A stretch of 64,000 nucleotides of DNA from Carpediemonas membranifera BICM (GCA_019828565.1 JAHDYR010000067.1:464244-528243); one strand, 5' to 3'. Positions 4,130-54,600 are shown, numbered from the stretch's first letter. The notes: a model not told the origin generated them from the sequence alone. Numbers and translations are program-made.

Positions 4130-4300
4130 CGGGTAAATGAATCACCATACGATGTGGATGAATCACTTCAAGAGCCCTTGACGGGAGGATGCGTTACGAT
4201 CTGCGGCCGCTGGGGTCACGTTTCGTGGCTCCGGTGAGTGGTGTCGGCGGTCGGCGAGTCGTCAGTCAGAATTTGGGCACCGAACTGAGCGCTGAAACCA

Positions 4301-15031: not shown

Positions 15032-15045
15032 ACGTTCTGAAGCGA

Positions 15046-23555: not shown

Positions 23556-23660
23556 GCAGCCCAGGGCAGACTGTCGGCCAGAGGCCCCGGGCGGTGTCAG
23601 TCGCGCGAAACCGGCCGCGCACTTTTGCAGCTTTTTTCACGCAAAAAAGTCAGAGGGCCG
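23556..23660 (+). repeat. 5' part of RNase P repeat unit copy 3 (continues at 41522-42093 after element A)
   Basis: Matches 15123-15227; the sequence resumes after the GGCCG duplication at 41522. Confidence 0.95.
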
Positions 23661-23741
23661 TGTAGTCTCAGTAGACTTTCGAGTGATCGGGGGTGTGCAC
23701 TTTAATGATCGCTACATTCCCCTCCAGAGGCCGAACCGGCA

Positions 23742-28375: not shown

Positions 28376-28417
28376 ATCTGATGACTTGACGCTGGAGCGA
28401 TTAGATGTGGTGAAGAT

Positions 28418-32354: not shown

Positions 32355-32674
32355 TTGAGGGGAATTAACGTTAATGTGCCTCGCTAATGCGGAGAATGCT
32401 TTTACAGGGAAAGAAGAAGAGAAAACCCTTGTGCCAATAAATGGCTTAAACTGTATAAATGATTAGTGTGGTCTATGACCACCACACAGCTCGTCGAAGT
32501 CGTCGGCCAGGTCCCCCAGGTTCTCTCGATGGACTGTGGGGAGCTCCTGCGAGCCAGACGCGGTGTACATCTGGGCGAGCTCATGGAAGTCTGCCGGCTC
32601 AAAGAGCGCGGGCGTATCAACAGGTGTTGCCTTGTTGTGGCCAAAGTCGAGGCCCACCGCGCGAAGCGCTACGG

Positions 32675-35600
32675 TGTGATATATACATATAATATATATA
32701 CATATAATTACCCTCTACATATAATCCCCTGATCTCGATACGGTCAATGGCCGTCTCGACTCGACACAATTGGTGTCGCCATATAAAGCAGTGCACCCTT
32801 CACAGTGTTAACACTGCGGTAATGATCCCCAGCTCAATGATTGTCCCGTCGCTCGATGCCGACTTTAATTCTGAAGACCTACGCCGTTTCCAAACGGATC
32901 TTGCCCGTCTCAAGGCAATTACAAGAGACCGCAACGTTCGTATGGCTACCTTCATGGCTCCCGAGACGCTGGACCTCCTGGAAGACTTCTTCGGAGAGGA
33001 GAATCTCATCGACGAAGACGACGAAACCATCGCGGACTACTTGCATCGCTTTTTGGCTCCGTCATCCACTGCCGAGCTTAAGTCAAAGCTCCAAAGCCTC
33101 ATTTGCCCCACAGACGAACATTCCGAACGTGTAGCACTCATTCGCCAGTTTATTCGGTCCTTCCGTGCGACATTCGCCGACATGGAGGACAGCGACTCGG
33201 AGTCAGAGAGTGAGGGTGGCCTCGTTGAGGACCACGTCTCACAGATGGAGCGCCAAGCAATGAAGCTCTTCATCGATGCCCTGGAGCCGAAGCCGTTCCG
33301 AGAGGCGGTCAAATTTGCGGCCAAAGTCAAGCGCCCCTCGAACCTCAAGGCAATGTACTCCCTAGCCACCCGAGAAGCAAAGCGAGACGACGCGGCCCGC
33401 CAAGAAGCCGAACGTTACGGCTATTATAGGCCGCCCCAGGCAAAGACCAAGTCCAAGAAGCCCCGAGGCCAGACCTCCAAGCCTTCTCCGTCCGACAGTC
33501 GCTCTTCTCCAGCCGATCGTCGCGAGGCCCGCCACAACAGCTCCGACAAGGCCAATGACGTCGACCCGGCCAAGAAGCCTCCCCATCGCCCTTGCTCTAG
33601 CTGCGGTGGCTGGCACTGGGACTCCCAGTGTCCGACAGGCAAGCCCGAGGTGAACCTCCTAGAGAACGCCAAGCCCCTCATGACCTCCGGCCAAATAAAT
33701 GGCCAGCAGTGTTCGTTTCGTTTGGATACAGGGGCGACGTTCTCAGCGGTGACGGAGGGAGCAGTGGAACAATTTCACTTACCAACTTGCACCGGGCCAA
33801 CGATACACTACGTGACCGCTGATCAGCGAGTGTCGAAGACAAACACCTATGCCACCGCTACAATAATATTGGAGAGGCTGACGCCGGTTGACGTCGAGAT
33901 ACAGGTACGGCTAGTGGTACTCCCAGGCGCTCCGGTCAAGACCATCGTCGGTCTAGACATTCTTCGCGAGCTCGGAGTCGTGACGAACGATGAACTCTTC
34001 ATCAGGCTCATCGATAAGGCCGAGGATGGCGACGATGGGGATGACATTGATGTTGAGATTAATCAGGTGGAGGAGACGTTGGATGACTCACTGTCGGCCA
34101 TCACTGTGCCGGATTCAGACATAGCTCCCCGACATATGGGCGCTGATCCGGGAGTTTGCCGAGCTGTTCGGGGGACTACCCCCGGAGGGCTCTACCCTTG
34201 GCCCCATGGCCATAGATACATCCGAAGACGCGCTCATCCAGAGCCGCCCGAGACACCTGGGACCCCCTAAGCGGGAGTTAGTGCGGCAGGAAGTCCGCCG
34301 GTTGAAGCGGGAAGGTATTATCCGAGACTGCCGTGGGCCGTGGGCAAGCCCAATAGTGGTCGCCACGAAGAAGGATGGGGCTATTCGACTCTGTGTGGAC
34401 CTCACTGCGGTCAACAACGTAACCAAGCCGGACCGGTTCCCGCTGCCGGACCTACGGTCCTTCGTCCACGAGGCCGCAGGTGCTGAGTGGTTCAGCAGTA
34501 TGGACCTCAGGGTACCATCAGATGAAGGTCCGGCCCGAAGACGTTTTCAAGACGGGGTTCGTCACCCCCGACGACTATTGCGAGTTTGTTCGCACGCCGT
34601 TCGGCTTGAGGAATGCTCCTGCGGTGTTCCAGCGGGAGATGCAGCGCAGCCTGGCACCAGTCTTGCACAAGGGCGCTTGCGTGTACATCGACGATATTCT
34701 GAACTATGCCCGGACGGCAGAGGAATACCTTGCTACACTCCGGACGGTCTTCGAGTGTTTGAGAGCGGCCAGACTAAGGCTGGCACCCAAGAAGTGCACG
34801 TTCGGAGCCAAGAGCGTGGAAGTGGTCGGGTTCGTCATTGACGGAACCGGCAGTCGCGTGTCGGAGTCGAGGATTGCCTCGCTCAGGGCCCTAGCTAGGC
34901 CCAACAACATGACAGATCTCCGCGGCATCATTGGAAAATTCAACTATCTGGCAAGGTTCATACCGGACTGCCAGAGGGTCCTCGCCCCGCTCTACGAGAT
35001 CAAGGATATGGGGCAGTGGACCGACGAGCACGACGGCATAGTACGCGAGCTCGCAGAGACGGTAGCGAACGCAGCGGCGCTAGTGTTCCCCGACCTGACA
35101 AAGCCGTGGCAGCTATACACTGATGCTTCTGACGAGGGCATCGGCGGGGTCCTGCTTCAGGGTGACCCAGGGGAAGAACAGGTAGTTGCCTTTTTCAGCA
35201 AGAAGTTCTCGGCAGTTCAAGGGCGGTGGTCGACGTATGACAAGGAACTATACGCCATTGTACACTGCGTGACACAGCCCGACCTCGCCCCGCTGTTCAA
35301 GCTACACCCAGACCTCACTGTGTGTTCCGACCACAAGAACCTACTATTCCTTCACAAGCGGAAGGACCTCAGCGCCAAGCTCGAGAGGTGGAGGATTATC
35401 CTGGGCGAGTATCCGTTCAGGCTGCGGCATGTAGCCGGGAAGGACAACGTAGTAGCGGATGCCCTATCCCGACTGCCGATGGAGACAAACTTACTCGACC
35501 GGCAACAGATTCCTGACGACGCTCGTGCATTACTAGAGTCTCTACATGGGGGCAGTGCGGGCCACGTTCCATTGGCAGCAATGCAGGACCGGGCGGGTGA

Positions 35601-37099
35601 TCGATGGGAGGAGATTAGACCCTTCACTCGCCAGTGGGTCGAAGAGTGCCCCATATGCCAGAAGGCACGGGAACCGGGGCGTACGAGAGTCCCCTGGCAC
35701 TCCACGCAGCACAGGCAGCCATTCGAGGTGGTGCAGCTTGATACTATCGGGCCCCTCCCCCAATCACCGCACGGCAACCAGTACGTTGTCGTAGTCATTG
35801 ATGCGTTCTCGAAGTACGTGGACGTCTACCCGGTGAAGAGCACCGACGCCCAGGGGGCGGCCGAGGTGGTTGCCCGCGTGTGTGGTCGATGGGGAGTACC
35901 ACAGACGATCCAGACTGACCAAGGCTCGCAGTTCCGAAATGAACTCGTCAACCAAGTCACGACTCGACTGACCCTCAACCATCGATTCTCCACCGCATAT
36001 CATCCTGCTAGTAATGGCATAGTGGAGAGAGCCAATGGCACGTTGGTCCGAGCTCTACGCAAGCTGTTGTTGGAGGCGGAAGACGACCAGTGGGAGCACT
36101 GGCTCCCCGGTCGCGCAGCTGGTGATTAACAGCGCGCCACACAGCACGCTAGGGGGCATGAGCCCACTCCAATGCCTCTTCGGCATCTCACCCGCCGTTC
36201 TTAAGTCGGCCGAGCAGTTGGCACCGATGGCGGAGGCTGTCGGGGCCCCGGCGGATCTGGCAGAGTGGGCACGGGCTCGGCAGGGCTTCAGAGCGGCAGC
36301 GGAACAAGCGGTGGGTGAGTATGAACGCCGCCAGGCTGCGAAACAGCCGGCTGAGTCTCAGTCTAAGGTACGGACTGGCGACCTCTATTTTGTGAGGTGG
36401 GCAACGAGACAGACGAAGTTGACTGCTAAGGCCCGTGGACCGATGCAGGCCGTCGGGCAAGGGGAAAGCCCGAACACCTGGCGCATGAAGGACTTAATCT
36501 CGCACAAGGTGGTACTGATCCATGAGGAACGGATAAGCGTGGCTAAGGTCTCGATGGAGCAAGCGGTGCGCTTAGCGGCACGGGATCATCAGGAATTCGT
36601 TGTCGAAAGGATCGTAGGCCACAAGCTCGGTAGTAGGAAGAATCGTTCGGCCATCTTGATCGAATGGGCCGGTTTTGAACCAGATGAAGCCACTTGGGAA
36701 CCGTTGAACGCGGCGAATGCGCAGCTAAGAGCTCTGGACGACTATTTGGACACTTTGACATCAGTAAGTAGGAAAAGGCTGGAAGGAACCATCCCGAAGC
36801 GCCATTAGGGAAATGTCGACGACGAACTTCGTTGTTGCGGACTCCTCGACGATTTATCGACTCCTGGACTATCCGCCGACTTCTGGACGATTACGTCAAG
36901 GGTCAGAGATTTGCCCTGGATTTTTTTCTCAGGAGTGAGGATTTATTTTTTTGGGTGGGGAGGGGGTAGTGTGATATATACATATAATATATATACATAT
37001 AATTACCCTCTACATATAATCCCCTGATCTCGATACGGTCAATGGCCGTCTCGACTCGACACAATTGGTGTCGCCATATAAAGCAGTGCACCCTTCACA
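32675..37099 (+). mobile_element. Ty3/gypsy chromovirus C (4425 bp) nested in A, opposite orientation
   Basis: 130-bp TGTGA...TCACA LTRs at 32675-32804 and 36970-37099; TSD ACGG (the 5th base is ambiguous with the LTR T); PPT GGGTGGGGAGGGGGTAG. Confidence 0.97.
32822..36808 (+). pseudogene. Element C gag-pol with three frameshifts (near 34130, 34505, 36105)
   Basis: CSSCGGWHWDSQC knuckle, LDTGA, TPFGL, YIDD, TDAS, D-D-E, chromodomain IEWAGFEPDEATWEP, spread over four overlapping ORFs. Confidence 0.9.
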
Positions 37100-37103
37100 A
37101 CGG

Positions 37104-37934
37104 TGCCATACAGGACTGCCACGGGCAGGTCGTTGACAATATAGGCGGTCAGCTCGGTCGAGGCTCGGACCGGAATGTCGAAGTATGGCTCTGAGATGAT
37201 GGGAGTGAGCTGTGCTGTGCCCACATACTCGCCGTGGACATCTCTCCAGCCGTTGACAGGGCCTGAGGCTGGTTTCACCTCGAGGGAGAGGTAGGCGGCA
37301 GCATCCGGGCGCATCAATATGGGGTACTGTTCCGCACCTGTGTCGAGTGACACGACCAGTGGTGAGCCGTTCCGCTGCGTGCGCATCACTGCGCGATATC
37401 GGTTCGTCGGAGTATCCGGTAGGCTGTCCAATAGGGGCTCGGTTGCGACTCCCGGCACGTATGACATGGGCTTATCAGCATCACGAGCCTCCCGGTTGCG
37501 TGCAATGCCAGGGAGGGCGAGATTGCGCCTCTCGGCTTCCTTCTTGACCTCGGGCATGACTGTCTTGCCTTGCTTATCGCACACTCGGTAGTGGTCGGTC
37601 AACTGCTTATTCTTCAGCTTGCTCGGATCAACGCGGAGCTGTTTGACAATGTTGCAGTCTTTCGTCGGGTGTGCGGTCAGGTGGAACGCGCACTTTCCGC
37701 CCGTCGTTCTCGGCGGGGGTGGTGCGAGTACGGGGCCCGAGCTGGGTTGTCGCTCTGGGGCCGTGTCGGACGATACTGGTCGCAGCAGCGGCTCGATACG
37801 GATCAAATCCGCTTGCAGCGAGCCGAGGGCCTCCCGTGCCTCATCTAGCATGGCGGTGACAGGCTCTGCCGCCGTGACGCGGTTGATAGAGCCCTCGCCC
37901 ACCAGATATGCTGTGGTCGTGGCGTTTGGGGAGG
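37104..37934 (-). CDS. Element A gag C-terminus and protease fragment
   Basis: CAFHLTAHPTKDC knuckle, LDTGA. In frame with 40643-41441 and 32491-32674 once B and C are removed. Confidence 0.9.
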
Positions 37935-40637
37935 TGTGGCAACAGGTTCTCTAGTCAGTGCAGTTTATGGTAAATAGAATCTCATCTTTGTCTCTTCCGT
38001 GCTGCCACAGTTATATAACTGCCAATAAGCTTTGCGGTAGTATCATGCTGGTTCGGATGGACGAAGTTCTGGCGATTCAGGAGAAAGAAAGAGGTGTGCT
38101 AGCCTTTCCGTTCAAAATTCTGCAGTATTTCGGCAGTGAGGGAGGTGATAATGCTTAACACCTAATATGCAGCGAATTCTTCCGTTGCTTGCTATGGAAT
38201 TCGCACTCCAACGCGAGTAGCGCAAGTCGGTAGCTCTGTTCATCATGGTTCCGTCGAAGAAGTGCGCCTGGGGACTATACGGCGTAAAAAACGACGTGAG
38301 ACAACACCTGGTGACGTATAATAGTAGAGCTGTGCGAAACTGACGACGCTGAATGAAGTCCGCTCCCACAACGAGTGCGAAAATCGATCGATCGCTAGCT
38401 AAGCGCAACGCGACGATTCAGGAAGACTTGCACAGAGGGGGGCGAGCTCCAGACACGAGGAGGACGGATAGCCATGATGGTGTCCCCTTGTAATGACCGA
38501 GCGAGGTAGAAAATCCCTCAATCTTTTGATTGAAGCCCGAGTGAGTGACCTAACCTCTCGAGCGAAGACTTGGGATGGCTAGAGCCATTTTGCCCCGCGA
38601 TGTTCAATTTGCCCCAGATTGATCAGCTGAGCGGACACATGTTCGTTTCAACCAAATAGCGGCTTTGCTTGCAGCTAAGTGGGATGTTCCCCTTGAAAAT
38701 GCTTAGTTTATATGCGAACAGCTGAAATTAGCTGCTATGTCCATGCTCCGACGACTTTTCGTGTGGTACTAGCGATCTTACGGACAATTTCGCTGTTTCA
38801 TGCCACGACGAGCCATTGTGCTGGTCCAGGAGCGTAATAATGCCTTGATACAACGAGTGGCTGCGTTGGCTGCTCTCTTCAAGTGATATAACCGTCGTTC
38901 CAGCGGCGTCGTTCCACGACGAGCGCCGCATCGAGCTCATCTAGCTCTCACCATTTTCCTCACCTTCCTCGCCACGCAAGCAGCAACGGGGTACCACGAC
39001 GAGGGTTCGTTCCCCCTACAGCGAGCTGACGTGTCTGAGACCATGTTCGATCGACCGAATCTTTATAGATTCGATGGCCGAATCTTCTGATATCTACGGT
39101 CTACAGAAGGAACTAAGTCATTCTAACGCATTCTAGCGTGACGAGAAGCCCTATAACAGATTTATGAGAGGTCTGACGCGACATTTGACCATTGTTGACC
39201 GCAGGTGAATTGCACCAATGATATGCCTCAAAAGGCGGGTAAGCAAGTTCATATGACATCCAGCGGTACAAGACGAGTGGTCTGCGGCGTCTGAGAGACC
39301 TGCACTGTGAAACAGGGAGGTGATTGGTCTGCTGCCCGCGCTGCCAACGACGTGGCGCGACAGCCTTTGAGGCCTTACAGCGGACGCAGGGCGAGGGTAC
39401 GAGCTGTATACGACGGTGATGTACGGGGTGGCGACCTTACTAGGTCCAGTCCGACCCACGGAGTCATTCATTTGACGGGTTGGCAGGTTGACCTTCGCCT
39501 TTATGACTTGACTTTTATGCTCATTCGATGGAGCCTTGGGACTGACGTATCGTGCTTGTGAGGTGGCCCAAGTCGGTCTGCCTTCTGCCAGTCTACCCAA
39601 CGGTGTCCATGTGCTGAGTCGAGGTTGGTGCTCCAAGCTCCGGCATATGCTAAGCCGGGACAGTGGCGAGCCTGAATCAGTGTGATGAGCTGTACAAATC
39701 AATCTCAGTGTCTATCGACCAAGACGTGACCTGAACCCGGAACGTGCGGAGGTCGACGGTGCTCCTTTAGCACACTTGGTCTGACGTGAAGGACACTTCT
39801 TCTTATGCGGGGTGGACGACGGTGACGAGCTGTGTTAGAACGTCTATCGCGATGACTTATATCGGTGATGGAGCTGGTCTCTGGTGGGTTGAGCGGCTAT
39901 GCTTGGCCTTGATCAGTATTCACGTCCAGGTCGGCGTGACTCCTATCCTTCCCTTTTGTTCGTAGATGATAAGTTGCCTTGAAGTGGGTGAGCGTAGGCC
40001 CAACGCCGGTCAAAACGACAGAGTACCGTGGATGGCTGGAAGCTTTCTTTCTGCTCGAAGTTACTGCCTTGAAGCGGCTGATCTTGGAGGCCATAAGAAG
40101 TCAGGCGGAGACTCGAGTTAACGAACAACATGAGGGGCAACCCCCACTCTCTCCTTGAAGGGACCCTGAACCTACTGGTTATTCCCTTCTGATGCGTGGT
40201 AACAGGCCACATGTCGCCGCAACATGTAGTTTCGGTGATGATGCCCTCGACATGATGTCGTGGTGTGCAGAGTTTTCTCTTCTGGAGTTCTCTGATATGA
40301 TGAGAACAGCTGTGTGCCAGCGGTCTCAGAACAACGCACCTTCTTTCCGGTCCTCGGCCGCGACCTTCCGGTCCGTGGGGGCAGGGTGTGCGGTCTTCTG
40401 CTCTTAAGTCGAGTCAGCCTCGAGCCGTTTCAGTTGTTCCTCGCCTGCCGTTTGCGCTGTTGTGCTTGGTACGGTCGGTATCTCTGCCATCTTTTCTGCA
40501 CTTCCCTGTTCTCCTTCTTCCGTTGTCCTGTCCTCGCCTTTGGCTCCGGGCCGTGGGGGCAGTGTGGCAACAGGTTCTCTAGTCAGTGCAGTTTATGGTA
40601 AATAGAATCTCATCTTTGTCTCTTCCGTGCTGCCACA
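37935..40637 (+). mobile_element. Non-autonomous LTR element B (2703 bp) nested in A
   Basis: Identical 75-bp TGTGGCA...TGCCACA LTRs at 37935-38009 and 40563-40637; 5-bp TSD GGAGG; GGGGGCAG before the 3' LTR; no gag/pol ORF inside. Confidence 0.92.
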
Positions 40638-40642
40638 GGAGG

Positions 40643-41441
40643 CGAGGCCATGGAGAAAGGCTGTCTTGACCTCCGTGCTGACCTTGTTGTCGTGCTCTTT
40701 CCCGCTCTTGTCAGACCTGTCGGCAAAAACGAAGTTATAAGTGGAGCGGAATTTGGCGAGGTACTCCAACACGCTGCGGCTCGTTGCGAGCTTGTCGGAG
40801 GTGTAAATGGGGCTGGGGACGGCCCGGAGAATCTCCAGACTTTCGGCAATCGAAAAGTCCAAGAGGTCGCGTATCAGCCAGAAGAACTGCTCTGCCTGGG
40901 TGGCGAGAGCCTGGGCGCGATTCAAGACGGGTTCCTTGTTCTCCTTAACCGACGGTGTCTCGGGGTTCGCCTCGAGGGCTTGCAGCTCTTTCACAAGCTT
41001 GATAGCCTCGCGGGCGGTTGTCTGCATATCAGCCTTCTCTTCTGAAGTGAGCTCGGTGCCGATACTCTTGAAGAGGACAATGGCGCGCTCGAGTGTCTCC
41101 AGCTCTTGGCGCTTCTTGCTGATGGCGTCCGGTGAGGGAGGCTTGGTGTTGGCGGTATCGCTCTTGACCGTGCGGTCCCTGGAATAGGGCACCAGCTCGG
41201 TAACCAAGTACTCAAACAGATCGTCGCAGGTCAACATCTTCACACCCTTGTCGTTGATATCCGTGTAAACTGTGCCGGGCTTGAAGTAGCCGCGAATAAA
41301 GTCTTCTACGGGACCAGGCGTTAGGAAATGTCGCAGGGGGTCCGGTTTCGTGGTTGTTTGGAAATAAGTTTTCATCTGATCGGTGAACGCCGCCCAAAGA
41401 ACGAGATTTCGTTCGTGCGGGGCGTTAATATCGGTAGTCAT
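40643..41441 (-). CDS. Element A gag N-terminus
   Basis: ATG lies 24 nt after the 5' LTR; the frame continues as ...HGLAS|PNATTTAYLVGEG across the B insertion. Confidence 0.85.
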
Positions 41442-41719
41442 TACTTTGTTTGCTGGAGAAGCTTCTGTAGTCTCAGTAGACTTTCGAGTGATCGGGGGTG
41501 TGCACTTTAATGATCGCTACAGGCCGAAGCGCCGCGAACTGAGCGTCTTGCTCGTTCTCATGCTTCGGCGCTCGCTAATGCTTCTGCCTTCAGCCCCTGC
41601 ATGGGCTGCGCGGCGAGGCACTTAGCGAAACGCACGTGAACTCCACGGCTGCGAATGCCTTAACGCATCGGGGCTACTCAGACACACGGTATACGCCATC
41701 TTTCAAACAACATCAACAC

Positions 41720-41974
41720 GACGTCGGAAGCCCGTGCCAGGGCGAGCGAGCGCTCGGGAAGGTCTGAGTTCGACAGTGAGCTGCGAGAGGCAGTCGGCAC
41801 GAAAGCGCCGCTGCAGGCACTAGAAAGCACCGCCGCTTGCTCGTTGACAGATGAGGCCCCGGCCGATGCTTAGAGCTCGCGGCGCTGGAAGCCTGCAGAA
41901 GTATCTATCAGTCAAATGCACGGGGCTGCTGGGCTCTCCCAGTAGAAACACAATTCAGACTACTCTCCGACGTC
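41720..41974 (+). ncRNA. RPR1: Nuclear RNase P RNA, copy 3
   Basis: Same CR-I to CR-V motifs and P1/P2/P4 pairings as copy 2. Confidence 0.93.
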
Positions 41975-42407
41975 ATCGCTAACCAACATCATCGCACCTC
42001 TAAATGCCGCCTGCCGTTGTTGCCCAGAATGGGTCGCGCGAGAGCACACGCGAGGCCAGACACCGCTGCTTCACGCCAGACCACTCGTCGCCCTGGCGCA
42101 CGTGACTCAAGCCTTTATCATTCCCGATTCACCAACCAGCACGAAAGTTCTCCCCCTCAAGCTCACGCCTCACGTTGACCATAGCGAGGGCACTGCCCCT
42201 GGAGAGCCCGAGTCGCAGCCAACATCGGCGTAGAAATACGTTGGTACCGCAATAGCATGTTGATTATTTCGATCTCGCACTGATTCGCACCAAATCATCG
42301 ACCAGATCAATCTGCCACTGCATTCACCTCGCCCACGCGCAACGTGAACTTGCTCCAAGCGCTTGAAACGAGACTGAAGAGAACTTGGCGTGCATATACA
42401 GGATTGA

Positions 42408-43536
42408 ATGTTTGATTTCGTTGATTTGAGAGAGATTACCTGGGCAGCTTTCTGCCTTGGTTCCATATGGCTCGTCGCCTTCGTTGGTGGGGCCATTCCG
42501 CTTGCATGGCGCATATACTCCGGCCATTCTAGCAAAGAATATCGCGTTTGATGCGATTATGGAGTACATGAACATGCTTTCAGCTGGTGTCTTCCTCGCT
42601 GGCGCCCTGCTGCACATGCTGCCTGAGGCCAACGAGGCTGCGGAGTCCACAATACCCGACGCCTCCCTCCTCGCCGGCCGCCCCGTTGCTTTCATGATCG
42701 CCTCCGCTGTCTTTGTCGCCATGGCCGCCGTCGACTACATCACAGGCGCCCACTCGCATGTCGAGGACAACGGCCTTTGCTCCCTCCACATCGTAGAGGA
42801 CAAGGAGCTTTCCGACGTCGAATCGCAGGCCAGCGACGCGGAGTCGTCCATCCCAGTGGCAGAGTCGGTGAGGCCAGACTACGGCGAGCAACAGCCGCCC
42901 GTGGACCAGCCCGACGATCGCCCGCCCGCATACCCCCATACGCACAGCGAGCATGCCCTCATGACATGCACCGAGGCCGGGTGCCAGGTCGACCACTGCC
43001 CCTACCCAGCCCGCCCCCACAGGCACTCGCCCAAGGCCCGCGCCTCAATGGGCCCTCTGCGGGCGTGCCTGATCCCTCTGTTCCTCCTCTCCGCGCTCTC
43101 CTTCCACTCGATCGTCGCAGGTTTCGGCCTGGGCGTGCTTCCATACGGGTCGACGGCGCGGATGTCCTGGGTCGCTATATTTGCGCACAAGGGGCTCGAG
43201 GCGATGGCTCTCGTCGCTTCCATCGTCCTGCATGGAGCAGGGGTGGGTGTAGTGGCCGCGGTCACTGTCGCGTACGCCTGCATCACGCCGCTGGGGTACC
43301 TCCTCGGTGCGGCCACGCATAAGCTTGTGGAGGGCGCAGCAAAAGATGCCGTCGTCTTCGTTGGCGTGTCCTTGTCGGCCGGGACGTTCCTCTATGTGGG
43401 CTTGATCGAGCTTCTAGCTCACACCATGCATCGCGACGGGCATGCCGCGGTGGGCCACCGAGTGGGGCACATGCTGAGCATGGCTCTCGGCGTGGCTGCT
43501 ATGACGGGCCTGCTCTTCCTTGAGGCCGACGAGTGA
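42408..43536 (+). pseudogene. ZIP transporter, copy 2 (extra A near 42534; real lesion or assembly error)
   Basis: Inverted near-identical duplicate of 10476-11603; AGCAAAGAAT versus AGCAAGAAT shifts the frame. Confidence 0.85.
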
Positions 43537-43694
43537 CGGGCTGATGAGCATGATAAATGTCAGAAGACCGCTGGACGGGAGGATGCGTTACGATCTGCGG
43601 CCGCTGGGGTCACGTTTCGTGGCTCCGGTGAGTGGTGTCGGCGGTCGGCGAGTCGGCAGTCAGAATTTGGGCACCGAACTGAGCGCTGGAAGGC

Positions 43695-45252
43695 ATGAGC
43701 AGCACTAGTTCCTCTCCAACGTGCATCAAAGACACACTTACCTCCGCATATCGCTCCTCGGTCGCCATAACGGCCTCCATCTCTGGGGACATCCCATCCT
43801 TGATCCAGTGCGCCTACTCCAGGCACTTCAAGAAGCCTCCTCGCCACGCTCTCAGAGATCCCCCCTCTCGAACCAACCGCGCAAGCCCTCCTCGACCGCG
43901 CCCGCTCGATCCTCACCAGCGGCCCCCCGCTGTCAATGAACGTTGAGCTCGCGGATGGCGAGGAGCTCCCGGTCGCCATGCACACGCTGAACCAGGGCGC
44001 GGTGTGGGCGTGTCTGCTGGGTGGCGGGGCCAACCCCGACCTCGAGGACAGGGTGCTGCAAGAGGCCCAAGTGCTGGGGTCACGTGGTACCACGATTTAC
44101 GACAAGATCCGCAAGGTCATCGCCCCCGAGGCCAAGTGCCTCTGGTTCCTCTGCCGCAAGTTCTTCTTCTCGCTGAACGTCGCCGAGAAGGACGGCGAGA
44201 GCTATCAGCACGCTTGGTCCTACATATTTTATCACCACCGCATGTACATGGACCGACTCTTCATGCTCGGCACTGCCAATCACACCGCCTTCACCAGGGC
44301 CAGGATGCCCAGGGCCCTCGAGGTCTACAGCAACATATGGACCCACATCGCCAGGACGCCCAAGGGCATGTGGGGCTGGGGGTATAGCGGTCATGGCCAG
44401 CTGGGGTTCGAGTCATTTGAGTTCAACGACCCGACCCGCCTTACCTTCCCCGCCTGCGCCGAGGTCGCCGAGCTCGAGACCAGCCTGCCCCCTTGGGAGA
44501 AGCACAGGATGGTGACTGATGTGTTGATGAAGGGAGATCAGACGTTCATTCTCACCCCAGTCGGCACTGTCATGGCTGGCGCTGCTTCGGTGCGCTTCGT
44601 CGGCCCAGTCGAGGAGGAGAACGAGTACCTCTTCCACCCAGTCGCTGTGCCCGCTGGCTTTGTCCCAGATCACATCATTCATGTGGGAAGTTTATTTATC
44701 GCGACTGTCATCCTCTCCATGGGCGATCGGCAGATGATCAGCGGAGACAACGATTATGGTTAGCTGGGAATTGGGCACGAGAATGAGATGACTGGCTTCG
44801 AGGTGCTGCCCTTCAGGGTCGACCGGATCATTTCTTCTGCACTTGATTTCACCGAGGAATACGGTGGCCGCCAGCTGCTGTTCGCTGGCGAAGTTCCCGA
44901 TCATATCGCCCAGTCGGGCCTGCTGCCTGGGTACAGAAAGAACGACAACTGCCTCACACCCACCCCGCTCCGGTTCCCAGAGAGGGTCAAGGGGTTCTGG
45001 TGTGACGATTATCAGATCGTCTGGGTGACCGAGGGTGCCACCCACTTCTTCCACCATGGGAAGCTTACCGTGGTTCCTATTGAGGCGACAGCGTTCAGTG
45101 AAGACCTGTACATTCGCTTCTGCGACTCAACCGGCCAGTGGTTCAGGGTGGTGGGTGAGTCAGATGGGGTGGCTGAGCTGGTCGAGTGCGAGGCGCCCAG
45201 AAGACCGAGAGACATCATTCCCGTCGATTTCGACCCAAGCCCTCAATCATAA
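43695..45252 (+). pseudogene. RCC1-like repeat family gene, copy 4 (in-frame TAG at 44761-44763)
   Basis: Same family; the CAG of NDYGQLG reads TAG here. Confidence 0.75.
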
Positions 45253-47205
45253 ACGTTCTGAAGCGACAGTGAGCTCCTTGCAGTTGAAATGTCCGGTATG
45301 GGAAGTTGACGAAACCAACCGGAAAAAGGCCAAAAGCTGGCAATCGGGATTTATCGGATCTCATTGAAAGCTATTCGAGCTCGAAGCGAGCGACGGTGCC
45401 CCGCGGCGCCAGCATCCACCAAATGGTAATTTCAGGACCAAGAGTTCGTCTGCTCTGGGGCACGAGAGCAGAAATGGGAAGTTTTCTCCTAACCCACTAG
45501 CCATAGGGCACATTGGGGAAGCAAATTGCTCCCCGGAGGAGATCGCCCGTTGCGAAGCAGGTTAGCGCCAGAGCGGGCCGGCAGAGGACAACTGGCTGCT
45601 CCAGGTGAGGTGCGCACCACCTCACCTGGAGCCCACTCCCTGCCCTGTATACCTCGCCGTGCGCCAAGCTATGTCGAGCAACAGATGATCGTCCTCGTGT
45701 GCCCAAAAATGCACAGAGGCAAAAACCACCCAAAAGGGAATAAGTTAGCCTCGGTAGGAAAGCGTTGACAGAATACACAGTACTCTAACAACAAACAAAA
45801 CCTACCGCCCATGCTCCTGGGACCCACAAGGGGACCAGACGCAACTAAACGCTCCTCGCACAAACCCACAAGGGAAATCAACGCGAACAAGCGTACTGCG
45901 CCACCTTTATGATTGAAACCCCTACCGTAACCGGTACCCGCAGTAGGCCCCAGAGGCACTGCGACACGATTGCCTCAGACAACTTAACTGGGGCCATATG
46001 GCAAAGTAACCCGAGAGCACCGGGACCGGCGGCCAATAGGCTCTCACTGGGAGGCCACTGGGCCACACTACTCCGGCGCCCGTGCTCTCATGCCGCCCAA
46101 GACCGGGCTTGTGGACGTCATCGCCACGAGAGCCGGGATCGCCGCCCGCCGCCGGCATAGGCAACAGGGCCACCACAACAGGCCCCCAGTACACCAGCCA
46201 TACCGGACAACAGACCGGGAGCGCTGAGGGCCCCGTCCACAGCCCCACAAGAAACGCCCAGCCGAAGCCAAAAGGCATAAACCATCACGGTGTTTACCAG
46301 GACTCACAACCTCTTGGGAGTGACGCGACCCAGGAAGGAAACAACCGGGCTGCGACCACAAGATACAGGACGAGGGGCGTGAATGGCAACCAGCTGGTGC
46401 AGCCGGGCGTCTATGCGAGCACGAAGGCGCTTATAGACCCGCATTTGGCCCCTCAGCTCAGCGTCGAAACCCCGAGCCGACTTAGACTCGTGGGGACTCA
46501 GGTCCTCGTCACGGTAATTCTGAGCCAGGTAGGAAAAGGCAGCGGCACGCTCCCGCCACCGGCTGGCCAGGACGTCCACCTGGGCAAAATCGTCAGCTAT
46601 GGTCCGCAGGAAATGCGCCTCCCAACCCCGAGGAGTCGCCGGGCCAGGAGTCGGGGACTCCCGAGAAGGAGCGGTGAAGCCCCTGCCGCCACAAGGCAAG
46701 GGACTACCCTGGGGCCCGGAGGGGAATATGGGATCCCCCGTCGGAGTGCGAAGAGGGCCCTGCTTCCCGGGAAAGAGGCGGCGCCCCCGAAATCGGAGTC
46801 CAGGCCGTACTCGGGCCAAGGACTCGATAGGGATCGGAGTGCATAACCCCTGGTAATGCACCTCCCCCTCTGGGGACCGCTGGGCAGCGGAGGCGCCGGC
46901 CGAATGGCCAGGAGGAGGCGTGAAGGTGGAAGGAGAGATGGAACGGACGCATGGGGAATAAGGGACAGCAGCCCCGTGTGGGGCGATGCTCCCTGTCCCT
47001 GCAATAAGGTTCCCTTTTGGGTTTTCGCCAGACATGTTTTGTGTGGAAACAAGGTCCGCAACAAACCTCGCCCCTGAACCATCTGCCCTGAGGAAGGGAA
47101 AGGAGCCATACAAGACCAGGACATCGCTGGCTGGCGCCCCTTGGAACCTCCACCAAACCTCCTCAAGCCCCTCCAAGAAGCTGGCAAAAGTGCACTTCCC
47201 GCCTT

Positions 47206-50200
47206 TTGCCACTCCAAATGGAAACAGGGGAATATCCCAACAGGGACATGCCAGATAGGGAAGAAAGCATGATTTATGGCTTATTCGCCCTTAAGGCTGC
47301 ACCCAGAAGGGATCTCAGGAAAACCAGAAGGGAAAAAGCAAATACGTCCATTATCCAGCTCGGCAACGCGATAGGATACGACAAGATTGTAGACCCAGAA
47401 CAGGGAAGCTTTACAGCAAAGGAAGGCCCAGGGGAGCTCCGGAAAAGCCGGGCCAAGAAGCTGTTTGCATCACTTCCCCTCCTGAGACGGTACACAAAAG
47501 CCGCCCAACAGCCATACTGGCTATTCATTGAAGGGAACCGGCTGGACCTAGAGCAGGCGGAGACACTAAGCCGGCTTCGCCCAGGGTCCCCCAAATTTGT
47601 GTTCTACCCCAGAGTCCAGGCGGACTACTCCAAGTACGTAGCACATCCCCACCGGACGAGCCAGACGGCACCAGCTAGTGAGCAACACACCCCATCACTT
47701 CTCCCCGTGGAGGAGGGCCTTGATCTCGGCCGAATCCATAACCGGGACTTTTCGAGACCACGCCACACAATGACCTCGAACAGCTCCCAAAGCGTCCCAG
47801 ACGCCTTGGATTGCGCAAACACCACCCCAAATGGGATCAAGGAGTCGTTAACGCCACTGGGCAAGCAACTGGCCACACCGGACGAATGGGACTGCATCAG
47901 AGCCTCAGCAGATGCGGCTATTCCCACAAGGGACGTTGCCATGGTCTTCACCAGAGATGACGCAACGGACTTCACTGCCCGAACGGGAAAGGTCGCAAGG
48001 ACGCTCCTCCTAGAGCTCGTGGCAACATCGCTGCAAGCTGCAGGACATTCTTCGATCTCAGGCAACGGCATCCAGACCAAGTACGGGATGGAGGCTGCAA
48101 TGTGGCTCCTCCATGCCGCCGGACACGCCATCTCCGCGGGAGCTGCAGCCAGAGGGCTCCCCCTCACTAGGACGCGAAAACAAGAAGCTCTGGGCCGACC
48201 TAGGCCGGGAACTAGCCAAAGGGCAAGGCTACCACGCCCCTCACCCCCCGGAGGGAGGTTTCCGCAGACCAGACGGCACGCCCATCCAGATCTGGACCCA
48301 GGGCCCCGTCGAGGAGATCCTCATCTACAGCAGAACCGAGGGTGTGATGAGGCCAGTCTTCCCACCCCCACCCCTGGAAGAAGAGCCTTCGGCAGCAGAG
48401 GCAGACCTGAGGGAGGAGGTCAGAGACCTCATCCAACGGTGGTCAGTCCCCGGCTTCCCCGAACTCTGGTCGGCATGGGATAAGACCAGGCGTCTCTGGC
48501 CCCCACCCGCGAGGATTGCCCGCGAACTGGTGTCTGCCTCCTTTCTGACGCGCAACATCACTAACTACTGGCTCACAACGGGGCAGACCCAAGTTATAGA
48601 GCCCGTACGGGACGGGGCATCTCATGGAGCCCTGGGTACTAACGAAGAAGAAACCCCCCTGGGCCCGAGCGGCAGCAGGACTTCCGGCCCTGATGACACA
48701 CCCACCACGCCAAACAAGGGCACATGCGGGCCCAGCATGGGAGCTAGCCCGCCTCGTTCCAATATCACCCAACGAGCCAACACCACCAGGCAGTTGATCG
48801 CTATGGTGGACTTTGAGGAAGGAAGAGCCAGATCCAACCAAGGAGACGAGGCCATCATTTGCGAAGGGGCGGCACTGATTTTCGACCCAGCTAACGAGCA
48901 AATCCTCTACTACATGCACGGGATGCTTGGGGAAGACATCACAGTGGATGCCCTGGACCAATGTCTGTGGGCCACGCACTACATCCATGGCTGCCCACCA
49001 GCTACGTTTGTCGACGTCACCACGGGCAAAGCCCCCAAGGGATACGAAGCAGACTTCCCCCACGCCAAGCGATGGTGCACCGAGATGGCTACAGAGCTGA
49101 AGAGACTGGAAGACGACTCGGGGCCACAGAAGACCCACGTCCACATCGTGGCTAAGGGAGTCGAGGCTGAGAGAAGCATCCTGACCAGTGAGAAGTTCGT
49201 CCCAGACGGGAACCTCCGCACCTGGCTAAGCTTACGCCTCATGGATGAAACTGACCTCAACACGATCTTCCCCAACATCCTCGACACGCTGACCTGGTTC
49301 TACCCCAATAGTGGGGAGAAGAGCCTCACCGGCCTCCCCTCCCGACCCCAGTCCGAACTGGGCCGGACCTGGACCAGAAGGTACCAACAGCGCCCGGAGG
49401 CAAAATTGGTGTGCCCCTATCACAAGCACGCACCCCACCACTGCCACTGCGCCCTAGCAGATGTCTCCATATTCTACGCCAGACTAGCAACAGCGTTCTG
49501 GATGAGAGACAACCCAGGCTGGGACTGGGGGCAGGTAGAAGCCCACCTCACAGCCCTAGGAAGCATGCTCATGGGCAGGGAGTCGCCGTACCATGATGAA
49601 TACAAGGACCTGGCGACCAAAGTCAACGCCAGACACGGCCTCGGCACCGTGGCGGCCGGTCGCCTAACCCCATTGTCCCAACAAGTCAACCTCTTTGGCA
49701 CCAAGAACCCCAAACGGGGCCAGATTATCATGACCAACTGGGAGGAAAACGATTTCAGCTCCGGAAAGGGTATCACCAGAGCCCTGGAAGGAACAGCCGT
49801 GATCATCGGAAACCCAGAATCGCTCGCGAGAGTAGGCGAACCAGCGCGACCCATCCTCCTGGAAATCCACTCGGAGTGGAACGGGCGCCGCCGCGCTGTC
49901 CAAGACGGTTTCCCTTGGGCGAACCTGAGGGGGGAGCCCACGGAAATAGACGCGGAAAAGATGCTTACTCTAGACGTCAGCGACACCAAAACGATGACCC
50001 TATCCCAAGCGGCGTCTTTGATGCCCGTCCACAAATTCGACATAGCTGGAGGCCACATGGGCAGAGAAGCCAGGAAGAAGATCTTCAACTACTTCACGGA
50101 GGTCCCAGCCGACGATCGAGAACTCCTGGCCAACATGTGTGTCGACCCGGAGACAGGCTCCATCAACTTCCTCCCCTCGTTCCTCCCCCGGGACTGGGGT

Positions 50201-51054
50201 ATCACGGATGAACCAGCAGAAAGAGGGAAGAGGCGAGTGGGCACCTTGAGGAGCGCCTCCTGGATAGGCAAACTCGCCCTGGCGGGCTCAGGCGTGGAAC
50301 ACCCAAAAGGGGGGAAGCCATGGGACACGCTGAACTGTGTTTTCCCGGAAGGCGCCAGCACTAACGCCAAGAACAGACTGAGGACCGAGAGGAAGCAGGC
50401 GCTTCGAACAAAGGTGAGACGAAGGGCTACTGAACTCGCCAAGATGCTCCACAGGAGGACGGAGGTCTACCTGCCGAATGGCGGCATAGGGGGCCTATAT
50501 GGCCCTCCACGCGAGCAAATTGTCACTGAACAACCGCAAAGTAGCAGGACAGAGCGAACAGAGCCCGGGCCCCCTCCAACTAAGAGCTGTGCCCCCCCAT
50601 ACCCCCAACCCATCAGCCAAGACCCGCCAGGTCAGACAGGTGGACCAAGAGGACCTGCAGCCCAAAAAGAGCACGACAGGAGGACACCGACCTGGGCAGA
50701 GGCATAGCGGCCCTGCTGGACCAAGCCATGGCCCGGCGAGAAGCAGAGGTCAGACAACAGCTGGAAGAAGCTGCAGCCAGAACCATCAACGAGCTCAAGG
50801 CCAAAAGCCAGGAGCTGGAGGAAGAACGGGAAGCCCGGAGAGCAGCCCAAGCTGCGTTGGACGAGATGCGGAAGGACCTCAGGAAGACAACGGAGAAGTG
50901 CTCGTCTCTAACCGAAGAGAACGAGGACTTACTCAGCCGCGCGGCCCGACTCTCGGCAACCAACGAAGCCCTCAGCTTCACCCTAGCAGCCAAGATGGAT
51001 AACTTCAGGTCTGACCTGAGAAGGAAGAGAGGCGAGGAGAAGGAAGGAGAGTAG
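47206..51054 (+). CDS. LINE ORF1 region (overlapping ORFs 47206-48483, 48113-50707, 50728-51054) with a DEDDh/zinc exonuclease-like domain and a C-terminal coiled coil
   Basis: VDFEEG, CEGAA, HYIHG, AKGVEAE, CPYH...HCALAD; terminal coiled coil. The ORFs are probably one protein broken by frameshifts near 48160 and 50665. True start unresolved. Confidence 0.6.
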
Positions 51055-51627
51055 AAACAATCATAAGTAAGAGGTGCAGAGGGTAGTGTGATATAAGTCT
51101 GAGCTAAAAGTGTATATACTGAACCAGCATGTATGGCCAGGCTGTGACTAGTAGGGCCTTAAAGTCCAAATGGACACCGGCGAACCATTCCGGCGGGAGC
51201 AAAAATGCAACACATTCTTTTTTCAACAAACCCCTGTGCCCCACAGGGGCCGGGGGCAGGGTTACCAAAAGGTAAAAAGAGCCCTGCCTGTCCGGCAGGC
51301 TGTAACTCCAGCCTTGGGAGGGGCAACAACCACTGTCGCTCCCACCTAAGCTCGTTAGGTAATGGTCCTGCCATGCGGCGAGGAAGGAAGCTAAGCGGAG
51401 ACCGGCAGCAATGCCGACAAGCATCGTGAGGCCCCGACTGTGAAAGGGAATGGTATGCCCTAGGCCGGGAACTAAGGGAATACAGGCACAAGCCTGCCCA
51501 AAAGGAAACGACTGCTCGGTTAGAGGCCTCAGCAACCCACCAAAAGGTACGCCCAAAAGGGAATGTCTACAAAGAGCAGATTAGTGCGCGCAGGGTAACT
51601 CCCGCAGTTTATGTCAGAACAACCTGA

Positions 51628-54600
51628 ATGAGAATAATATCGCTAAACAGCGAAGGGCACCTAGCGGGCGCAAACGATTACAGCGGATCCATAGCTTTAT
51701 CCATCCGCAAGAGGATAAGGACTGATGCGATCCTCCTCCAGGAAACCAAGCGGTACGGTAATACCACCATCCCTTGCTGGGTAGATCTCCAGTACGCCTG
51801 TGCAGGAGAGGTCAAGCCATTAGAGGCAACGCGCAAGCGACCCACAAAGGGACTGGCCACACTGATTAGCCCGCACTCCAAAGCGGAATGGGACGTAGGC
51901 GTGTCCGACGGGACGAACCCACGAATCCAAGTAAGCATCCTCAAAGCATCGAGGGCCACGGCAGTCATCAATATCTACGCTCCCGATAGTGGATGTGCAC
52001 GACCCGATGTGCCCTTAACCTGCGGAATTCGTAAAACAGTCTTTATCATATTTCTGGGCCCTAGCACGGCACAGTATCGATACTGCCGATTCAAATGAAG
52101 ACTCTTACAATTGACACCCCGTTCGCCGTCGAGAGAGCACTCCAGGAGTACCTCTCGGCGATGCCCCACGAGAAGAATCCAATTTCGTTCTTTAGGGCAT
52201 TGTCCCCCGAGACAACAGAAAAACTTCGCGCCCAGTGGCGCCCAACCACTCTTTTTGACACTTTCGAGGACCTACAACGAACCGTTCTGTCCGATTCCGA
52301 TGCTCGCCGCGCGGCGAACACAAGCTCTGCCAGTACTGCGGCACGAGCCCGTACAACGAAGACCGACAACCTCACCGCCATCTGGGTAGAGGAGGTACAG
52401 AAGACCATAAGAAAAGCCACGTTCGCCGCCTGTAGCGAGTGTGCAGCTAAGCACAAGGACCCCACCCTGACAGCAATGACCCGGGAGTGCCTTGAAGCTC
52501 AACATCCCCAGATACTGACTGACTGCGGCAAGAAGGCCCGCGACTTCTTCACCCAGCTGACCGACGACCACGACATCGCAAACGTCGAGACAGTCGCACG
52601 GCCTGGCAACCTGACCGGCCCGGACGGCGAAGACGTCTCGGTGGCGTTCGTGTACATGCCCCCAGTGCCCGAGGAGACCAAGCCCGCCCCCTCCTCGGCG
52701 GCTTGGCCAGTCTTCGATGGCGGGGACGTCTACGCTTTCCTCGCCAAGGAGGCGACCTCCATCGCCCCCTACCTCGCATATACCCTCTTGACTAGTACGG
52801 ACCCGGGCGCAAGAGCCAAGCTCCTCAAGGCAAAGCTCGACAACATCACGCTATACGGTCCGGAGCCCCGGCACCGAACGGCCGTCGAGAAGGCACGTAA
52901 GCTCATAAGCGCCCTCAACCCAGACATCAAGGACGTCCCCACCATCTCCGCAAAACTGCTCGAGCGGATCATTCGGGACTTCGCCACTAGAGGTTTCTCC
53001 AAAGAAGCCGAGGATGTATACGAAGAAGAGATTGAGGACTACTCCGACAAGATCAGCGAACTTCTCGACAAACTACGCGACTTGGATGTTGATCACGACG
53101 AGAACATCATTATCCCATGGCGTGCCTTCAGACTCGCCAGCCCACAAGCCGACAACAACGAGCAGGCGTCGGGCACTTCAGGCAGGAAGCCGCTCGCTCG
53201 CAGGCTCGATGGTCGCGATCCGTTCCAGCAGTTCAGGGACAAGACCAAGTTCCGCATGCCTCCTTCCCACACGAGATACTGCACACAGCATGGCTGGAAC
53301 CCGCACCACGAGACGAAGGACTGCAGGTTCCTCATCAGACGGGAGGCTTACAAGGCCCAAGAACGCCAGCCACAGACCGAGAAGCGTCAGGAACGCAGAC
53401 CCGAAGAGCGGCAAAAGCAGCCCGGCAACCGCGCACGCCCTGTGGCGCCCACCAGTCACCAACAGTCGGATCGCCGGGCCGGCCGCATGGACCTCCGCCC
53501 CTCGTCTACCCTGAAGAACCCCCGCCGCGTCGATGAGGTGTTTGACGCGGATGAAGCGTCTCATTCGGAGTTGGAGAACGAAGTCTACGAGATCGAGGAC
53601 ATCATACTCGACAAGGACCCGGTGAAGGTCCCGGCTGTTATCAACGGCCAGCACATGAACGTCAAGTTCGACATCGGCGCTTGCACGTCGGTCATATCAG
53701 CCCCTGCCCTCGCAGCGATCCCCGACGTGACCCTGATACCGACCTCAGTCGAACTTCTCGGCGCTGGGGACGAGATCATCTCCACTGGCAAAGCCGCCAA
53801 GGTCTCGCTGACCCTCCCCAGTGTCGACGGAAAGACCGTGACCACCACTGCATTGCTCATGGTCACGAAGGGCCAGAGGAAGAAGGTCCTCATTGGACGC
53901 GATTTGCTCCGCCGCCTCGGCTTCCTGCTGAACGACCGGCTACTAATACCGTCCGCTGACCCGATCGATGACGACGACGGCCTGGGACAGCACCCCTACC
54001 TCGACTCGACAACAGAAGAAGTCGACCCCGAGGAAGAGTGGCGCAAGGTTAAGCTGCCGACCGAAGAGAACCCGGAGCTGGCTGCCTGGCTGACCGACTT
54101 CCTTCGCGAGCGCAAGGCCGTGTTTGGCCCTCTACCTCCGGATGGCAGCAGGATGCCGCCACACGAGATCGTCGTCGATCCAAGCCGCCCTACACCCAGG
54201 GCCCGACCCAGGCCGTTGAAGGGTGACCCGGGAAACTCAGCCCTCGCGGAGATCGACAAGATGCTCAACCAGGGCGTGATCCGAGAGAGTCAAAGTCCGC
54301 ACTCTAGCCCGCACGTCATGGCAAAGAAGAAGAGCGGCGAAGACCGCTTCTGCATCGCTTACAACGTCTTGAACAACGCCACCATCGACGACCTGTACCC
54401 CACGCCGGACATCCGATCGTTTGTACACGAGGCGAGCGGATGCTCCGTGTTCGCGGCGCTCGACCTGCGCAGCGGATACTGGCAGCAGAACATGGCAACC
54501 GATAGCATCCCGCTCACCGCATTCACCGTCCCGGGCGGGCATTACGAGTTCTTACGTACACCATTCGGGCTGAAGAACGCCCCAGCAAAGTTCCAGCGAG

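Follow-up and report, generated by a model that had tools for sequence, protein, structure and literature searches.

A self-complementary site in place of the tRNA primer-binding site in a chromovirus clade that probably primes reverse transcription by pairing two of its own RNAs

In one clade of chromoviruses, the position directly after the 5' LTR is occupied by a short, perfect palindrome. Its position and symmetry are conserved, its sequence is highly diverse, its occurrence is restricted to this clade, and it shows neither tRNA-type nor Tf1-type complementarity. Reverse transcription in these elements probably begins with the pairing of two element RNAs, and it appears rather likely that the palindrome is the minus-strand priming site of chromoviruses that gave up tRNA primers, via dimer self-priming. 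The start of reverse transcription is a defining step of retroelement biology, for which, to our knowledge, only two primer sources are established in LTR elements, namely host tRNAs and the fold-back of Tf1. A self-complementary site shared by a whole clade suggests a variant of priming that depends on dimers.

The palindromes were found in five families, A to E, within a 64,000-nt stretch of the Carpediemonas membranifera contig JAHDYR010000067.1 (the window, i.e., the whole stretch of DNA that was analysed). All five are Ty3/gypsy chromoviruses (Metaviridae) with LTRs of 56–130 nt, and TG...CA LTR ends, a polypurine tract before the 3' LTR and target-site duplications of 4–5 bp are present in 5/5. 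Element A (23661-41521, minus strand) contains B (37935-40637), C (32675-37099) and D (26447-32486) as nested insertions; E spans 52008-56926. The 56-nt 5' LTR of A (TGTAG...CTACA, 41466..41521, minus strand) is a 100% repeat of the 3' LTR at 23661-23716, which together with the adjoining polypurine tract GGAGGGGAA (23717-23725) makes up 23661..23725 on the minus strand, and the target-site duplication GGCCG lies at 23656-23660 and 41522-41526. The 5' LTR of B (75 nt, 37935..38009, plus strand) is repeated at 40563-40637 with the duplication GGAGG, and that of C (130 nt, 32675..32804, plus strand) is repeated with 100% identity at 36970-37099, with the duplication ACGG and a polypurine tract at 36953-36969. 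The 5' LTR of D (112 nt, 32375..32486, minus strand) is repeated at 26447-26558, with the duplication CAGC and the polypurine tract GGAGGGGCAG at 26559-26568, and that of E (66 nt, 52008..52073, plus strand) is a 100% repeat of 56861-56926 with the duplication CCGA.

Pfam searches of C, D and E give the order protease, reverse transcriptase (RT), RNase H and integrase with a C-terminal chromodomain. RT, RNase H, integrase and chromodomain were detected in E, the protease in addition in C, and the protease and a gag zinc knuckle in addition in D. The nearest solved relative is the Ty3 Gag-Pol polyprotein (E value 1e-78). Element E encodes a single gag-pol ORF of 1579 aa (52095-56834), and an exact-protein look-up with this protein, made in search of transcript ends, returned no match. 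Element B had been described in an earlier note on this DNA as non-coding, which agrees with the absence of any ORF longer than 183 aa; this non-autonomous element has kept both the palindromic site and the polypurine tract.

All five palindromes of the earlier note were located where it had placed them. With LTR ends placed by means of the 3' LTR copy, polypurine tract and target-site duplication, and without reference to the palindromes, a perfect core of 8–10 nt, different in each family, begins at base +1 after the 5' LTR in 5/5, and the symmetry reaches 1–2 nt into the LTR end. In A, the palindrome AGAAGCTTCT (41457-41466, minus strand) consists of the core GAAGCTTC (41458..41465) extended to 10 nt by the LTR-terminal A and the next T. 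In D, ATTAACGTTAAT (32364-32375, minus strand) extends the core TTAACGTTAA (32365..32374) to 12 nt with A/T flanks. The remaining three lie on the plus strand and reach 14 nt with CA/TG flanks: CAGTTATATAACTG in B (38008-38021, core GTTATATAAC at 38010..38019), CAGTGTTAACACTG in C (32803-32816, core GTGTTAACAC at 32805..32814) and CAGTATCGATACTG in E (52072-52085, core GTATCGATAC at 52074..52083). Perfect 10-mer palindromes occur in the window at a background rate of 1.2e-3 per position and 8-mers at 4.6e-3; from these rates, the chance that all five LTR ends would be followed at +1 by such a palindrome, a 10-mer in four cases and an 8-mer in one, is about 9e-15. The further features attributed to the site by the earlier note hold as well: no TGG is found within 5 nt of the LTR end in the five families, no copies of the cores occur inside the LTRs of the window elements, and the gag ATG follows 7-16 nt downstream of the core in A, C, D and E (16 nt in A).

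Eighteen further elements with the same layout were found in C. membranifera, metagenomes and read-run assemblies, giving 23 in total. The contigs of assembly GCA_002919055.1 also occur in the metagenome collection. The core begins at +1 in 12/12 elements whose LTR end is fixed independently by the 3' LTR; in the other 11 of 23, the LTR end is inferred from a single collapsed LTR copy and not from a pair. The read-run contigs are collapsed circles with k-1 overlaps and are uninformative on RNA ends; in five collapsed contigs, the only joining was of tail to head across their exact overlap, which made the one LTR copy readable. In 22/23 elements, one or more LTR nucleotides take part in the symmetry. 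The claim that position and symmetry are conserved and sequence is not is borne out by 22 distinct cores among these 23 elements of one clade. C. membranifera alone holds seven families with seven different cores (A to E and two at locus L004), and the sole sequence trait shared by the cores is a weak preference for T at +2. The short LTRs hold an AT-rich box, and the site lies 20-45 nt downstream of this box and just upstream of, or overlapping, the gag ATG. Most of the 15 elements that were tabulated in full have a gag start 0-30 nt downstream of the site.

In a tree of the RT-RNase H-integrase region, 20 palindrome elements and two probable ones fall on one side of a branch with an SH-aLRT support of 90. 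Seven outgroup elements were read, of which five have a canonical or near-canonical TGG and two have neither TGG nor palindrome. The five that were taken into the tree all lie outside the palindrome group, four with a canonical TGG and one with the TGG one base in. The outgroup controls with a TGG site include L012, L055, L069 inner and L078.

Complementarity of the site to known types of primer was searched for in several ways. Among the 15 fully tabulated elements, a TGG within 5 nt of the LTR end occurs in one, where it is part of the palindrome and of the gag ATG; in the five window families, which all lack the TGG, the site is not a tRNA 3'-end site. ARAGORN found no tRNA genes in the window or in seven loci, and a stretch of L005 that resembles a T-arm, in its 3' untranslated part, had no Rfam tRNA match. 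A fold-back of Tf1 type was examined by comparing LTR complements of the 16 nt after the LTR, with G:U pairs allowed, to 500 shuffles. LTR-to-site pairing did not exceed that of shuffled LTRs in 15/15 elements (P 0.11-1.0), and fold-back was rejected, in agreement with the earlier note. A search of the whole elements for a second copy of the palindrome (at least 7 nt) gave counts at chance level and inconsistent positions, which led to the rejection of a second box as known from the GalEa elements described below.

In the established scheme of reverse transcription, the inner end of the LTR is set by the position of the primer's 3' end. The primer must thus end in the complement of the first post-LTR bases and, because the site is palindromic, this complement is the site's own right arm. 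With 22 cores in 23 elements, seven of them in C. membranifera, a matching set of host RNAs is implausible; each element matches itself. Since the site is complementary only to itself and has no complement in the LTR, pairing between two RNA molecules is implied. The retention of site and polypurine tract in the non-coding element B also counts for a priming-site reading. Dimer-mediated self-priming is the best reading of these observations; the pairing of the RNAs, the cut, the nuclease responsible and priming from the cut end are steps that we infer. Two genomic RNA copies would pair via the self-complementary site to form an RNA duplex of 10-16 bp that includes the last 1-3 nt of the LTR. 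One strand would next be cleaved by a nuclease where the 8-14 nt core ends on its 3' side, and the example of Tf1 suggests that this nuclease would be the element's own RNase H domain. The RNase H domains of C, D and E and the gag zinc knuckle of D fit this scheme. The new 3'-OH would lie opposite the first post-LTR base of the partner and would be extended across U5-R, yielding minus-strand strong-stop DNA. Later steps would follow the usual LTR scheme, with the polypurine tract priming the plus strand and the copied palindrome serving the second strand transfer. A cut in both partner RNAs would deprive the template of its site for the second transfer, so that an asymmetric cut or a template switch would be needed. 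As the cores are short and AT-rich, pairing would also need a chaperone.

The earlier note had left open whether the site pairs between two RNAs or folds back on itself. In the latter case, after a cut 3' of the palindrome, the 3' end of a small hairpin would copy the upstream U5-R of the same RNA. The versions of 14-16 nt can form predicted hairpins of 5-6 bp with -2 to -4 kcal/mol, and the 3' end would come to lie at the LTR because the symmetry reaches into it. However, a hairpin would put no constraint on its loop bases, whereas self-complementarity of the four central bases is seen in 23/23 elements, which favours a full duplex between two RNAs. Predicted energies for the site alone range from 0 to -4 kcal/mol for the hairpin, with 0 for the versions of 10-12 nt, and from -9 to -24 kcal/mol for the two-RNA duplex; predicted folds of the elements revealed no common hairpin. 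Furthermore, a snap-back would leave the LTR-terminal CA covered by the primer and not copied. Thus, the two-RNA variant of the earlier proposal is favoured by the self-complementary centre and the duplex energies, and the snap-back variant is disfavoured and distinctly improbable.

The palindrome could also have a role other than priming. Palindromes in retroviral leaders are known dimerisation sites, and self-complementary 5' leader sequences of 6-16 nt dimerise retroviral and Ty1 genomes, so that the chromovirus site could dimerise without being a primer; the predicted duplexes are stable enough for dimer nucleation. It would then be a dimerisation or packaging signal only, and another primer would pair with a few bases at or near the LTR end. 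This reading is unlikely but carries some weight. Against it, all elements carry the site immediately after the LTR (+1), where the 3' end of a primer must pair, and the symmetry enters the LTR. No other primer-binding candidate was found: among the 15 fully tabulated elements, the single TGG within 5 nt of the LTR end lies within a palindrome, and in most of them gag begins close by. Moreover, the seven cores in one genome would require seven primers. That the symmetry acts on DNA or is incidental to expression, as the site of a dimeric protein, a promoter or initiator, or a translation-start context, is very unlikely. The location between the AT-rich box and the gag ATG would suit such a function, as would the absence of G:U pairs: none were seen at the palindrome edges, where the symmetry is usually broken first by C.C or A.C. 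However, 22 sequences with no common motif beyond the weak T at +2 argue for pairing and not for protein recognition, non-coding B retains the site, and the elements would be left without any primer site. Half-tRNA priming, as in copia and Ty5, occurs in some LTR elements (PMC6317226), and each core might accordingly correspond to part of a host tRNA or of another small RNA, be it internal sequence or a fragment. Only a very small probability is assigned to this explanation, since cloverleaf tRNAs, with loops breaking up their helices, would not be expected to contain perfect palindromes of 10-16 nt, and since the cores are so diverse, even within one genome; the ARAGORN result for the window and the loci examined points in the same direction.

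Dimer-mediated self-priming shares several traits with known systems. Tf1/sushi elements (Tf1 of Schizosaccharomyces pombe) are likewise Ty3/gypsy chromoviruses without a tRNA site, and their primer is derived from their own RNA, with a cut in an RNA duplex needed to provide the 3'-OH, as in the reading proposed here. Self-priming of Tf1 is reported to depend on cleavage of this duplex by RNase H. The site of Tf1 is not palindromic: the transcript's initial 11 nt fold back and pair with it, so that the LTR holds the complement of the site, in contrast to the elements of the window type with their self-complementary site. The Pfam domain SH3_Tf2-1 was not detected in C, D and E; it is present in the plant outgroup element P0102. 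Self-priming of Tf1 type has been predicted for the plant Tcn1 lineage (PMC6317226). The Skipper chromoviruses of dictyostelids have lost the TGG site and show no LTR complementarity, and an unconventional self-priming has been proposed for them (PMC5006619), but their LTR is followed by a polypyrimidine stretch and not by a palindrome.

The earlier note presented the site as a candidate new priming mechanism; a claim of complete novelty is overstated. For fungal GalEa Copia elements, a Conserved Hairpin Site, i.e., a roughly 10-nt palindrome adjoining the 5' LTR, was reported by Donnart et al. in 2017; it includes the final A of the LTR, replaces the primer-binding site and has no tRNA or Tf1-type match (PMC5445492). 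The authors concluded that no described model fits and proposed no mechanism (PMC5445492). Position and inclusion of the final A are shared with the elements studied here. However, the GalEa palindrome hardly varies in sequence (85% of families have CTGATCAGT or CTAATTAGT) and a second complementary box 12-41 nt downstream forms a hairpin (PMC5445492), whereas the cores of the present clade differ in almost every family and lack a second box. In addition, integrase precedes RT in GalEa, as in other Copia elements, and RT precedes integrase here. A literature search for palindromic primer-binding sites in chromoviruses or Carpediemonas found nothing beyond GalEa. The dimer initiation palindromes of retroviruses and Ty1 are likewise short and self-complementary, lie in the 5' leader and pair two genomic RNAs, but they occupy the loops of hairpins, and a separate tRNA primer-binding site lies upstream of them; in the present elements, the palindrome itself is at the primer position (+1) and there is no separate primer site.

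The chances are about even that these elements represent a third mode of LTR priming, in which co-packaged RNAs pair at an LTR-abutting site and the cut 5' fragment of one primes the other, so that dimerisation and priming become one event, and which may have arisen independently in this deep protist chromovirus clade and in fungal GalEa Copia. If true, a dimer-dependent variant would explain the GalEa palindrome and make dimerisation of the RNA a direct part of priming; the elements would also depend on no host RNA, tRNAs included, and their LTRs could be as short as 56 nt. For in vitro tests, the 22 variants found in nature constitute a ready compensatory-mutation series. Common LTR finders apply a minimum LTR length of about 100 nt and seek a tRNA site, so that elements with LTRs of 56-130 nt and no tRNA site would be missed in protist annotation. 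The LTRs of all five window elements are unusually short.

Carpediemonas membranifera is a free-living metamonad, and the G+C content of the window lies between 51 and 63% per 2 kb, mostly between 55 and 60%. Five LTR retrotransposons were delimited in it by self-comparison and direct reading: A (23661-41521, minus strand, LTR of 56 nt, target-site duplication GGCCG), B (37935-40637, plus, 75 nt, GGAGG), C (32675-37099, plus, 130 nt, ACGG), D (26447-32486, minus, 112 nt, CAGC), and E (52008-56926, plus, 66 nt, CCGA). All of them have TG...CA ends, a target-site duplication, and a purine tract before the 3' LTR. A hosts B, C, and D as nested insertions, and identity within the LTR pairs is 98-100%. 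The set of domains encoded by C, D, and E, namely protease, reverse transcriptase (RT), RNase H, integrase, and a chromodomain, identifies them as Ty3/gypsy chromoviruses; no ORF longer than 183 aa is found in B. The best solved relative is Ty3, and the closest named relative of the polymerase of E, at 62% identity, is encoded on C. membranifera contig JAHDYR010000067.1. The insertion of B, C, and D into A is a local chromovirus pile-up of the kind expected from chromodomain-guided targeting.

Direct reading bears out the earlier note at the coordinates it gives: in all five elements, the 5' LTR is followed without a gap by a perfect palindrome. Its core comprises 8 nt in A and 10 nt in the other four, and the symmetry reaches 1-2 nt into the LTR end. 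Perfect 10-mer palindromes occur in the window at a background of 1.2e-3 per position and 8-mers at 4.6e-3, giving a joint chance of about 9e-15 for the arrangement observed in the five elements.

Contigs with relatives were fetched by the closest polymerase matches (30-40% identity), and metagenome contigs were also scanned with a clade profile. This yielded 18 further elements with the same layout, 23 in all. Two more families, with LTRs of 57 and 82 nt, are located at C. membranifera locus L004. Several elements stem from NCBI assembly GCA_002919055.1, whose contigs are also present in the metagenome collection, and several from ENA, JGI, and Logan assemblies, with LTRs of 57 to about 306 nt. 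Among the 23 elements there are 22 distinct cores of 8-14 nt, most commonly 10 nt, and in 22 elements one or more nucleotides of the LTR end belong to the symmetric stretch. The core starts at position +1 in all 12 elements in which a 3' LTR bordering on unrelated sequence gives an independent LTR end; in the other 11, the LTR end was inferred from the CA preceding the palindrome because only one collapsed LTR copy is available.

More distant Ty3/gypsy elements, fetched in the same way, served as controls. The plant-type chromovirus L012 carries TGGTATCAGAGC immediately after the LTR, L055 and the inner element of L069 carry TGGTGGCAGCGG, and L078 carries TGGGGGCTCGTCC. In L031, a TGG lies one base in from the LTR, and in L049 and L050 both a TGG and a palindrome are lacking after the LTR. 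In a tree of RT, RNase H, and integrase, which comes from a quick search and has long terminal branches, 20 palindrome elements and two probable ones are placed on one side of a branch with an SH-aLRT support of 90, and all five outgroup elements included are placed on the opposite side. The palindrome is thus a marker of a deep clade, not a peculiarity of the window. The observation is real and general for this clade.

A tRNA 3'-end site was rejected: of the 15 fully tabulated elements, which were scored for TGG and LTR complementarity, 14 have no TGG within 5 nt of the LTR. The exception is the relative L001, where the TGG belongs to both the palindrome and the gag ATG. In Skipper chromoviruses, the tRNA site has also been lost, but a polypyrimidine stretch is found in its place (PMC5006619). 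Self-priming of the Tf1 type is the closest mechanism; however, its defining LTR complement is absent from the 15 tabulated elements, as the earlier note had stated for the five cores of the window: the longest pairing of the 16 nt following the LTR with the LTR itself, allowing G:U, never exceeds that with shuffled LTRs. Among published observations, the Conserved Hairpin Site of fungal GalEa Copia elements comes closest: it is a palindrome that likewise includes the final A of the LTR and replaces the primer-binding site, and its authors found no described model to fit it (PMC5445492). The GalEa elements differ in belonging to the Copia superfamily and in having a near-fixed site sequence and a second box (PMC5445492). 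A hairpin of the GalEa type was rejected for the elements studied here, in which a second copy of the site does not occur at a consistent place; predicted folds of the elements gave no common hairpin, and no Rfam families overlap the palindrome sites. Literature searches yielded no paper on a palindromic site in chromoviruses and no account of Carpediemonas LTR elements. In the relative L005, a stretch resembling a tRNA T-arm (GGTTCGAATCC) lies in the 3' untranslated part, at about 4310-4390; neither ARAGORN nor Rfam called a tRNA in it.

In the established scheme for LTR elements, U5 ends on its inner side where the 3' end of the primer is annealed, which requires the last primer bases to be complementary to those that directly follow the LTR. 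Since the site is a palindrome, its own right arm supplies this complement. C. membranifera harbors seven families with seven different cores in one genome; host primers matching all of them are implausible, and each element matches itself. Of the two forms of self-pairing that had been proposed, pairing between two RNAs is favored over a snap-back hairpin, because a hairpin would let the central four bases vary, and these are self-complementary in all 23 elements. The predicted energies point the same way: by folding, a single site reaches 0 to -4 kcal/mol, and its duplex with a second copy -9 to -24 kcal/mol. Two element RNAs would accordingly pair through the palindrome, and cutting at the 3' border of the core would leave a 3'-OH that faces position +1 of the partner and is poised for copying U5-R, with the 1-3 bp of symmetry past the cut staying inside the duplex. 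The cut, the enzyme making it, and what becomes of the template's copy of the site are parts of this scheme that we infer. Tf1 self-priming reportedly rests on RNase H-dependent cutting of an RNA duplex. Since cutting both partners would strip the template of its site, the model has to assume either that the cut is asymmetric or that a template switch takes place. We regard the two-RNA form, with moderate confidence, as the best available reading. It would be a new variant of self-priming, but not one without precedent. Twenty of the 23 elements have T at position +2 of the core, mirrored by A at the opposite end, and most LTRs terminate in ACA; a cleavage preference of the enzyme may underlie this bias.

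LTRs of 56-75 nt are found in A (41466-41521), E (52008-52073), B (37935-38009), L001 (1-57), and L004 (9952-10008). As LTR finders are commonly set to a minimum length of about 100 nt, such elements are likely missed in annotation. In most short-LTR elements, the LTR contains an AT-rich box located 24-46 nt upstream of its end, speculatively a promoter or poly(A) signal. The otherwise unrelated LTRs of B, the outer element of L004, L003, and L005 share a similar GTAAA-containing motif, preceded by a T-rich stretch, 35-45 nt before the LTR end; in B (window 37958-37978) and the outer L004 element (9960-9980), it reads GTGCAGTTTATG. This motif may act as promoter and poly(A) signal in one. The gag ATG annotated for the outer L004 element is found 8 nt inside the LTR; transcription would have to start within the LTR, and at most about 30 nt would remain for R plus U5.

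Several further features were noted in the window. An AT-rich cluster of overlapping 14-nt palindromes at 22330-22352 adjoins no LTR. The plus strand shows a marked excess of A between 46000 and 62000 (AT skew 0.16-0.34). Large ORFs flank E, and one of them (56950-59922), with RT as its only domain, is probably a non-LTR retrotransposon that was the target of the E insertion. Nuclear RNase P RNA (Rfam RF00009) has four full-length matches of 84-88 bits, at 15421-15675, 61317-61571, and 41720-41974 on the plus strand and at 12037-12292 on the minus strand. They are enclosed in a repeat of about 750 nt, whose copies are 98.7-99.6% identical by self-comparison. To our knowledge, multiple copies of an RNase P RNA gene are unusual. 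One repeat copy is split by the insertion of A (41521/41522 and 23660/23661, 5-bp duplication), about 199 nt upstream of the RNase P RNA; this may represent insertion near a Pol III gene or coincidence. Direct and inverted duplications of 1.6-3.7 kb with 89-96% identity involve 4170-5850, 8818-12490, 13406-15061, and 41522-45282.
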